From Chlorokybus atmophyticus (Eukaryota > Plantae > Mesostigma and Chlorokybus algae), in the NCBI GenBank assembly GCA_009103225.1, contig RHPI01002090.1, forward strand, positions 706,414 through 770,413: a stretch of 64,000 bases of DNA, read 5' to 3'. Each line of letters begins with the position of its first letter. Within the stretch, counting starts at the first letter, position 1. The notes below the pieces were generated by a model. It was not told the origin of the DNA and did no database searches. It saw only the letters and a list, made by a program, of their open reading frames with translations. Below are positions 58,362 to 61,633 of this stretch, in pieces. The position numbers and the translations under genes are program-made.

Positions 58362-61300
58362 ATGGAAGCCTCAGCGCCTGGAAAGGTGAGGCGGAGACAG
58401 GCTTGATGTATGTTTTGCGGTTCAGCAGCAGCTGATGCTGATGGTGCTTGGAGTGCTTGCTGCCCAGACAGCTGTTGTTGCTGGTGCGTTCAGGTAATCT
58501 TGTTTGGGGAGCATGCTGTGGTGCACGGCAAGGCGGCGGTGGCCGCCAGCATCGGCTTGCGCACCACCGCGAGGTGCGTGCCGCTGCCGCAGGACAAGCA
58601 GGTGCTTGAGCTGCACCTGGCCGAGTTCGACTTGGTCTGCACTTGGAGCGCCGCTCAAGTGGCCAGCGTGGCGGTTGATACGGTTACTGAAGCAGCTGGT
58701 GCGTGCTTGCACGGTTGCTCATGAAATGCAACAGAAATGTACACAACATGCAGCGCAAAGGCTGGCTTGGGCTTTGTAACAATTGTATGGGGTGATCGAT
58801 CGATCAGCCTGTGATATGGCTCCACCCATTGAGCCATGCTTAAGGTGTTTCAGCTGTGCTTGTTTGAGAATGCACGCATGCAGATGGTGTGGTGTGCCGT
58901 GCCACTGACTGTCCGATCAATGTATGTGTCGTGCAAGAGTTGCTCGTCGAAACACCAGTCGCATGCACACAGCAGCTAGTCATGGAGGTAGAGACGCCTT
59001 TCTTACTTCCTTTGGGCAGACTCTCGTGGCGTGAAGCAGGCAACACCGGAGATGGTGGCAGCGTTGATGCCGCTTGTCGATCAGCAGCTGCAGCAGACCG
59101 CTGCCGATGAAGCTCTCTCCAGCCGCCTGTCCGCAGCACTCCTGGCATTCCTGTTCTTGTACACCGGCATGCTAAGGTGAGCCCTACTATGTCATAACGG
59201 CCTTCTACACATCTGCCGCTTGTTAATGGTAGAGAGGTGGGTTACACATGCATGGCATCCCACCTTTCCCAAACATGTAGTTATTCCCGCCTCCTTTGCA
59301 TATGCGCATGCGTGTGACTGGTGTTCGTGGCCATGCCATTTATTGGCATGCCACCTCTTCCCAAACTTGTTACCCCACACCCACCCACCCACCCCCCTCT
59401 CCACCCACCCACACCATTGCCCCTCCCACATCACAAATTTGTGCATGCGCGGTTGGTGTGTCTGTGGCCAGCTGCCAGGTTTACTATCGTCATTCTTACC
59501 TCCACACACCTGGGGCGCAGAGGCTGTTCGGTGCAGGTGGTTGTCACGTCGCAGCTACCTGTCGGAGCTGGTCTGGGTTCATCCGCAGCTTATTGCGTCT
59601 CGCTAGCGGCTGTTCTTCTTTCATGCGCTCAGTCGTTCAGCACAGATGGCGAAGGGAATGCAATGAAAGGGTTAACAGAGATGGGCAGTACGCAGGACAA
59701 GAAGGCTACCACAAAGCGCATGCGCCTGACACCAAGAAACTTGGAGTTGATCAACGCCTGGGCATTCCAGGCTGAAAGGCTACTACATGGCAACCCATCA
59801 GGAGTTGACAACACCGTTAGCACTTTTGGTATGTTTTCTGGGCGCTTCCTCTTGTTGCTGGGATAGCCAGCTTTTGGTAACCCGGCATGCATTGCAGGAG
59901 GATACATCAAGTTTCGGCTTACTATCGAGGGTCCAGAATCCGCACCCGTTCCAGAGTACGTACTTTCTTACAGCCTTGCGATGCATTCGACCACGTGCTC
60001 TGCTTGCTGTCAATGCATGGGTCATTGACGGGCATGCAGTGTGCCAGGTTTGCGTATTCTGCTAACTGACACCAAAGTGCCTCGCAACACCAAGGCAATT
60101 GTCGCGGGGGTGGCAGCCAGAGCAGCGCAGAAGCCTGCACTGTATTCAAACCTTTTCAACACGGTCTGTTGAGCACGTGCAGTGCATGCCTGGACATTCG
60201 CATAGCCTGGTGTGATACTTCTATTGCATTGCAGATAGATAGCGTATCAGAAGCATGCATGCAAGCGTTTGCTGACTACCAAGCCGATGTGGCAAGCGGT
60301 GAGTCCCGATGGTGTGATTGGTTACGTCACACAGGCGTTTCGCTTGCTTGATCTGTTCATTCCTGCCACATGTGTTGTTTGACACATGTGGTTGAGTCTT
60401 ATGTATGAGCAGTGTCTGCCATTCCCAAGATGGCAATTGGCGATCGCGTTGTGCATCGCCACAGCTACGCGAGAGGGGTTATCAAGTCGCTGCATCCGAC
60501 ACACCTGAAGTATGTTGTTCAGTGGGATGCTGATGAAGACTCTTTTGCGCCCGCCATACGCCATCGATACACCAATCATGAGTTTCTTCACCCTCAATTC
60601 CAGGGTGAGCGTTGCACTAGATTGTCCTTGCAGATGTGTCGGCCAACCTGTCACGCAAAAGACTGGTGGCTTAATGGCCAGAACTGTATGTTTTCCTTGG
60701 CAGGTGTACAGGAGAAACCTATGCAGAAAGGTCAAAGAGTTCGGGTGATCCTTGGCAAGCACTATGGCAAGGAAGGCGGCATTGATGTGTTCAGTCCAAA
60801 GCGATCCACAATAGTGTCTGATCATGATGGTGTACGATTGCGCCTGTATAACACGGACCTGCATGTGATTGATACTCCACCCGCCGCAGGTAGAACTCTC
60901 GTTACTGAACGCAACATGTTTGCAAGATGTTCTCTTGTTGTAGAACGCATGCTGTCTGTTGTGCTGCTCATTCCCATGCGGTTGTGTGGAGTATGTGGTA
61001 TGTTGTACTCGAATGCCAATCGCTGGCGTACTTGACACGTTACAGATGCTGAACCTAAGCTCTTGACCGCTTGACAGTTCAGTCATCCCTGCAGGTGGCA
61101 CCTGTGCAGGAGCCGGTGTACACAACTTTTTGGACATCATGCAGGTTAGTCAAAACCGACCGTTTGATAGATGATAGTTCACTGCCAGCTTTTAGGTCGT
61201 AGCTGGCAGCGTAACATGCTGCTTGTTGCAGGACCTGATGCGAATCAATCAGCATCTGTTGGGTTGCATTGGGGTGTCACACCCAGCCATAGACACAACA

Positions 61301-61633
61301 TGTCGCATCACTTCCGAGTACGGATTGCAGTCAAAGCTTACAGGAGCTGGTGGTGGAGGCTGTGTGGTCACCATTCTTCCGTCAGGTAGCTTTGTAACGC
61401 CTCAGGCGTACTACTTGTGCTGTTGTGTGAGTAGCAATGGTATCTAGATGCCAACGCCGTTACATGCGGTGGTGATTGCAGGCATAGTTGCGGCTTCGGT
61501 GACTGAGCTCCAGCAGCGCCTCCAGGCAAACAACTACAGGTGCTTTGAAGTGGAGGCTGGGGGTGACGGAGTGCAGCTTCAAGTTTTAAGGGACGGCAAG
61601 GCAGGCGGCAAGGCCCAGGAGGCCGCATCGTAG
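58362..61633 (+). CDS. MVK: Mevalonate kinase (GHMP family)
   Basis: MEASAPGK|[17 protein letters not shown]; [15 protein letters not shown]; [20 protein letters not shown]; [15 protein letters not shown]; [16 protein letters not shown]; [12 protein letters not shown]. Stop at 61633. Confidence 0.95.
60413..60889 (+). CDS. Two symmetric phase-1 exons encoding SH3/KOW-like barrels inside the MVK gene (cassette exons or nested gene)
   Basis: AG|60413-60604|GTGAG (192 nt, [33 protein letters not shown]) and CAG|60704-60889|GTAG (186 nt, [26 protein letters not shown]-like). Both are in frame with the flanking MVK exons that end at 60298 and start at 61095. Confidence 0.65.

Follow-up and report, generated by a model that had tools for sequence, protein, structure and literature searches.

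The mevalonate kinase gene and its two additional exons

The 64-kb window, that is, the whole stretch of Chlorokybus atmophyticus DNA analysed here, carries on its forward strand a gene for mevalonate kinase (MVK). The public 557-aa protein of this gene (EukProt EP00898 / JGI Chlat1 Chrsp26S04200), hereafter P0001, maps exactly onto the window as 12 spliced exons, and every intron of this mapping is GT-AG. Between MVK exons 7 and 10 lie two exons, X1 and X2, which the original prediction had read as in-frame exons with clean AG/GT ends and symmetric phases. The spliced mapping of P0001 returns the same borders and phases, and the peptides that had been quoted for both exons are present in the sequence. 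The features are as follows.

58362-61633, forward strand: MVK gene (CDS span), 12 exons, 557 codons and a stop; equals Chrsp26S04200 (P0001)
60235-60298, forward strand: MVK exon 7, ends in phase 1, its last base (G) being the first base of the split codon; encodes the end of the helix that precedes the variable loop
60299-60412, forward strand: intron of 114 bp (GTGAGT...GCAG), contains in-frame stops
60413-60604, forward strand: inserted exon X1 (exon 8), 192 nt, phase 1-1, P0001 residues 314-377; first half-module
60605-60703, forward strand: intron between X1 and X2, 99 bp (GTGAGC...GGCAG), open in frame, of non-coding composition
60704-60889, forward strand: inserted exon X2 (exon 9), 186 nt, phase 1-1, P0001 residues 378-439; second half-module
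60890-61094, forward strand: intron of 205 bp (GTAGAA...TGCAG), includes a hypothetical alternative acceptor
61095-61144, forward strand: MVK exon 10, starts in phase 1 and resumes the MVK C-terminal domain; encodes the helix before the conserved N-Q-x-L-L motif

The three introns around X1 and X2 (114, 99 and 205 bp) are within the range of the other introns of the gene (69-344 bp), and the acceptors of the MVK gene all share the local form (T/G)GCAG. The donor at 60890 (GTAGAA) is weak; the last MVK intron likewise begins with GTAG. Since the length of the 99-bp intron is divisible by three and its frame is free of stops, its retention would also keep the MVK frame, and because X1 and X2 are symmetric as well, several in-frame isoforms are predicted to be possible. 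On the reverse strand, an open reading frame of 272 codons (60322-61140) shares its codon boundaries exactly with the X1/X2 frame. It was rejected as a gene, since neither Pfam nor PDB gave a match and since about 0.7 frames of this length are expected per window at the low local frequency of stop triplets (0.033).

The host gene encodes a recognizable MVK. When the 207-codon open frame at 60412-61035 was used as a HMMER query against 1.84 billion representative proteins, P0001 was retrieved at E 1.4e-72. P0001 exceeds the Pfam gathering scores of both GHMP domains (GHMP_kinases_N, PF00288, 37.2 bits for a cut-off of 22.3; GHMP_kinases_C, PF08544, 38.9 bits for a cut-off of 21), its best solved relatives are human MVK (2R3V, E 1.2e-68) and rat MVK (1KVK), and it shares 39-44% identity with land-plant MVKs in the best local alignments, the values over the core being 40-44%. 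In an alignment of 76 sequences, the invariant columns K8, E14, H15, S149/S150, E214, D225, T268 and G494-G499 are all kept. The AlphaFold model built from this alignment has a pLDDT above 90 across the MVK core, and the predicted fold matches 2R3V with a TM of 0.83 (Foldseek). Judged by its sequence and model, the Chlorokybus protein is thus a normal mevalonate kinase with an intact catalytic core. It resembles the canonical enzymes 2R3V and 1KVK in both GHMP domains, in all invariant motif residues and in predicted fold, but differs from them by 126 extra residues, which form a repeat-built module with homologues elsewhere. No second Chlorokybus MVK was present among the 120 best matches listed, no transcript-derived Chlorokybus MVK was found in the protein collections, and the 90% cluster of P0001 has a single member. 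In MVK exon 4 (59521-59828; P0001 residues ~165-195), the GHMP N motif is followed by another, smaller stretch that is lineage-specific and rich in Gly, Lys and Thr; it is modelled at low confidence (pLDDT ~56).

The extra residues sit between positions equivalent to human MVK residues ~280 and ~293, and in the model they separate two long, confident helices (P0001 residues 283-315 and 446-468). This loop is the longest and most length-variable of MVK and tolerates length change. Indeed, the linker measured from the conserved I-D to the N-Q positions in 120 MVKs has 20-39 residues in 111 of them, 49-79 residues in bryophytes and a lycophyte, 145 residues in the protein P0011, and 165 residues in the Chlorokybus MVK with its cassette. 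Without the cassette the Chlorokybus linker would have 39 residues, which is the modal length; the expectation that skipping both exons would give a normal-looking kinase is thereby supported. The module is absent from all 119 other MVKs examined, and no other MVK carrier was found among the 1.84 billion representative proteins, in agreement with the claim that canonical MVKs have no such domains. P0011, a 541-aa MVK from a transcript-like Logan contig of about 2 kb, falls outside the land-plant clade and carries a low-complexity insert of about 124 aa in the same loop. It shares a short R-H-R-x-x-N-H-E stretch, similarly placed, with X1, but this match is marginal (shuffle p ~0.03). As a homologue of the module the P0011 insert is unproven, with a local score of 36 (shuffle p ~0.03) and no similarity to the related copies described below.

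Coding status, relatives and putative fold of the module

Together X1 and X2 encode a 121-aa module that aligns end to end (BLASTP) with two tandem copies in another Chlorokybus protein, P0002 (Chrsp33S05149, 748 aa), the only other clear match among the 1.84 billion representative proteins. Identity is 35% over 124 columns with copy B (P0002 residues 225-347, E 9e-20) and 26% with copy A (residues 63-178, E 2e-8). Both alignments pass straight over the X1/X2 junction, with L-H-P-Q-F-Q-G-V-Q-E-K-P of the MVK insert facing L-H-P-L-F-E-G-V-R-E-P-P of P0002, and leave no room for the 33 intronic codons. At the protein level, X1 and X2 are therefore coding and spliced to each other, 60604>60704 being the junction that matters. 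Since the homology starts a few codons past the 60413 acceptor and stops at the 60889 donor, the borders of the module are also exon borders. Base composition agrees with this coding status: GC1 (0.63-0.64) and GC2 (0.38) of X1 and X2 resemble those of the MVK exons, whereas the in-frame intron at 60605-60703 has a GC1 of 0.38 and a GC2 of 0.53. The earlier claim of real in-frame coding exons inside the MVK gene is hence sustained. In a substitution-only neutral simulation, in which the exons were joined and the gain of stop codons was scored, 3-10% of the replicates drifting to 35-60% identity remained stop-free. The simulation lends moderate support to selection for an open frame; the argument would fail if a much closer, unannotated donor copy were present elsewhere in the genome.

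P0002 contains the same two-half module twice in tandem, and shares with the MVK insert the positions V-x-H, W-D, L-x-P, G-x-x-E/V-x-P, Q-x-V, G-x-x-x-G and L-H-x-x-D. Of the opening M-x-x-G-[DQ]-RV that had been noted in both exons, the G-x-RV part is conserved in P0002, but the two Met positions are Leu and Thr in copy B; the Mets of X1 and X2 are therefore not conserved start codons. Unlike MVK, P0002 is not a kinase; it has no Pfam domain above threshold and a long C-terminal part. A Cys/His-rich stretch of this part (C-x-C ... H-x-x-H, residues ~460-520) has no Pfam match; a resemblance to zinc fingers of the WRKY/FAR1 type is possible. P0002 may, by its sequence features, be a DNA-binding or transposase-derived protein.

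Outside Chlorokybus, the nearest kin of X1 are weakly matching repeats (E ~1e-3) in two metagenome proteins, P0003 (234 aa) and P0004 (283 aa; JGI/IMG). These are variants of one protein with three to five X1-like repeats of about 55 aa, of the pattern G-D-R-V ... K-G-V-I ... V-Q-W-D; X1 itself reads G-D-R-V-x-H ... G-V-I ... V-x-W-D ... L-H-P. P0003 matches phrog_1690, a phage protein family of unassigned function, at E 3e-7, and both proteins otherwise give weak matches only, to SH3-like families (MSSS, YccV-like, Spt5 KOW2). No locus for P0003 or P0004 turned up among viral and metagenome contigs, a search of these contigs with the P0001-P0002 alignment gave no result, and when the insert of P0001 and the module-bearing part of P0002 were used in word-based protein searches, nothing but the queries came back.

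The two halves of the module are related to each other. The alignment of X1 with X2 by hhalign scored 26.9 (E 4e-5), whereas 60 controls with shuffled columns reached 9.3±2.0 (maximum 16.8). The cassette thus consists of a unit of about 60 aa that has been duplicated in tandem, and the predicted tandem pair of small domains is confirmed in this sense. The domain names that had been given to the halves fared less well. The KOW label of the second half has some basis in the motif G-Q-R-V-R-V-x-x-G-x-x-x-G-x-x-G and in weak resemblances, namely to Pfam KOW (PF00467; 17.7 bits, below the cut-off of 22.3, E 0.003, over positions 1-17 of 32 only), to the N-terminus of uL24 (E 0.04-0.06 among PDB sequences; TIGR01079, E 0.01) and to the NusG-like UpxY family. 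Moreover, the half of P0002 that is equivalent to X2 gives an independent weak match to uL24. The label does not hold as a family assignment, the match being under the Pfam threshold and limited to half of the motif. For the first half, the Tudor/CarD label was not upheld: X1 has no Pfam match, nor any to Tudor or CarD, and no Tudor-clan family matched X1, X2 or the 207-aa frame at E values up to 10, while P0002 matched Tudor_3 at E 0.063, below the cut-off.

Structure prediction (AF2) gave a pLDDT of 45 when X1 was modelled by itself and of 30-46 for the insert within the full protein; at such low confidence, the model of the insert is not usable for judging an SH3/Tudor fold or an aromatic cage. 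The ESM Atlas had no usable match to either the MVK module or P0002 copy B, and a profile search of PDB sequences with alignment A1 returned nothing meaningful. Compared with the KOW/SH3-like barrels of uL24 and NusG/Spt5, X2 and the matching half of P0002 fit the KOW profile over its first 17 positions, and glycines alternate with hydrophobic residues as in KOW; in contrast to these barrels, the module lies below all curated thresholds, has half of the motif and occurs outside a ribosomal or NusG context. Tandem readers of the Tudor/Agenet type (53BP1, SGF29, UHRF1) are about 120 aa in size and have two related beta-rich halves of about 60 aa with conserved aromatics. The module is like them in size, in its two related beta-rich halves and in its conserved aromatic positions, but it differs in that the insert has no profile match. 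Taken together, these hints make small SH3-like barrels of the KOW/Tudor kind the most likely fold of the halves. The module may thus be described as putatively tandem SH3-like, with a KOW-type motif in its second half and without membership of either the KOW or the Tudor family.

Proposed origin of the cassette and its probable inclusion in the mRNA

Exon shuffling of symmetric phase 1-1 modules follows Patthy's rule and is best known from animal extracellular proteins. X1 and X2 have the features of this process: each half-module is a single 1-1 exon, these phases equal the phase of the host intron, the module borders are exon borders, and an unrelated gene, that of P0002, carries the same module. 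Since each exon is one half-module in phase 1-1, the cassette reads through in frame, and the symmetric exons, the retained internal intron, the matching host phase and the second, unrelated carrier make classical exon shuffling a fitting explanation. The case differs from the classical ones in that the host is a metabolic enzyme of the cytosol, in a streptophyte alga of early divergence, and in that the module is lineage-restricted. We propose that a gene of the P0002 type was the source of the two-exon cassette of about 121 residues, which would have been duplicated as DNA together with its internal intron and would have landed in a phase-1 intron of the Chlorokybus MVK gene. The module would so have been placed in the variable loop between two helices of the C-terminal part, with the catalytic core untouched. 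We consider it probable that the cassette was indeed shuffled into this intron, that it is retained in the mRNA and that it forms a putative binding module.

A transposable-element origin was considered and is not supported, as there is no extra copy of X1 or X2 within the 64-kb window and no terminal repeat, the repeats flanking the insert being short and at chance level. The suspicion that the exons might recur as fragments of transposable elements was thus not confirmed, the exons being single-copy within this window. Rfam had no match between 58000 and 62500.

Inclusion of X1 and X2 in the mature MVK mRNA, either constant or as a skippable cassette, is probable in view of the gene model and the sequence. 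The public model Chrsp26S04200 already contains both exons. The Chlorokybus annotation was made with MAKER, which combined ab initio, homology and assembled-transcript evidence, and 9,066 of the 9,300 Chlorokybus CDS were reported to be transcript-supported (PMC7027972). Because this transcript-informed model includes both exons, an MVK isoform carrying the insert is favoured among the options of the original prediction. A gene predictor would include open, phase-matched exons such as X1 and X2 even if they were rarely spliced in; the transcript-informed annotation raises the prior for inclusion of these exons, short of proof.

The main alternative is that the cassette is a silent intronic relic, skipped in nearly all transcripts, so that the true enzyme would have about 431 aa and the 557-aa model would be an over-inclusion. 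The typical linker that skipping would leave is compatible with this, as are the weak 60890 donor and the GC3 of X1 and X2 (0.51), below the MVK exon mean (0.62). Nevertheless, the 126 codons are open despite only 35% identity to the nearest known relative, as in few of the neutral replicates; all four splice sites of X1 and X2 match the consensus of the MVK gene itself, structural positions are conserved with respect to P0002, and the annotation pipeline drew on transcript evidence. We therefore regard a silent relic as rather unlikely. Much less credit is given to a same-strand nested gene, in which an internal promoter would drive a protein of about 130 aa starting from the Met at 60431 and ending by read-through at 61033-61035 or via the 61046 acceptor. 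The region of homology does begin right at an ATG, the frame is open to 61035 (stop at 61033-61035), and an alternative AG with a short tail is available. But this Met is conserved in neither copy of P0002, a protein that carries the module internally; similarity stops precisely at the 60889 donor, and the next 47 codons are non-coding in composition. Both outer phases moreover fit the host intron, which would be needless for an independent gene, and no small stand-alone protein of this kind was found among the representative proteins or in word searches of longer proteins. The nested gene that had been put forward is thus very unlikely.

The acceptor at 61046 had also been linked to a truncating isoform, an MVK without its C-terminal GHMP domain that would be a regulatory or decay-targeted product. 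The predicted acceptor is present in the sequence, an AG at 61044-61045 within the 60890-61094 intron being followed by nine codons and TGA at 61072-61074, and it shows no sign of use. In favour of such an isoform there is only this AG, preceded by a pyrimidine-poor tract, and the in-frame stop nine codons on; against it, the AG is indistinguishable from many other AGs of the intron, the tail has neither conservation nor homology, the similarity to P0002 having already ended at the 60889 donor, and the product would miss the invariant glycine-rich motif of the MVK C-terminus. We give scarcely any weight to this explanation. A cassette shuffled into the MVK gene and probably retained in its mRNA is hence the reading that we prefer.

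Possible role and significance

If retained, the cassette would most likely serve as a binding module carried on a loop, with catalysis unaffected. Its partner may be a protein, a nucleic acid or a modified peptide, and the module would tether or regulate MVK rather than alter catalysis directly. It could equally be a passenger that the MVK loop tolerates. In a more specific version, which we find unlikely, MVK would be a true chimaeric enzyme whose tandem KOW/Tudor-like loop module recognizes one specific partner, be it RNA, DNA or a modified protein tail. Through this partner the enzyme, which is the first committed kinase on the cytosolic route to isoprenoids, would be linked with chromatin, the translation machinery or the surface of an organelle, and alternative splicing of the two symmetric exons could switch the link. 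The original prediction saw here a new regulatory handle on the mevalonate pathway; this is speculation, and there is no reason yet to suppose that the pathway is regulated differently in Chlorokybus.

The feature itself is real and present in the public gene model, and we found no paper describing the MVK insert. Our literature search likewise found no paper linking Chlorokybus with MVK or with exon shuffling, and, among papers naming both mevalonate kinase and Tudor, those listed appear irrelevant by title or abstract. The Chlorokybus MVK would accordingly be a known enzyme varied by exon shuffling, with an insert of putative fold and role. In practical terms, it offers a test case of domain insertion and an occasion to correct or confirm a public gene model.

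To conclude, the module represents an undescribed family of repeats of about 60 aa, known so far from two Chlorokybus genes, with remote resemblances among phage-like metagenome proteins. Provided that it is expressed, the cassette would offer a clean and datable instance of exon shuffling in which an essential pathway enzyme received a lineage-specific module in a permissive loop, and this in an early-diverging relative of land plants.
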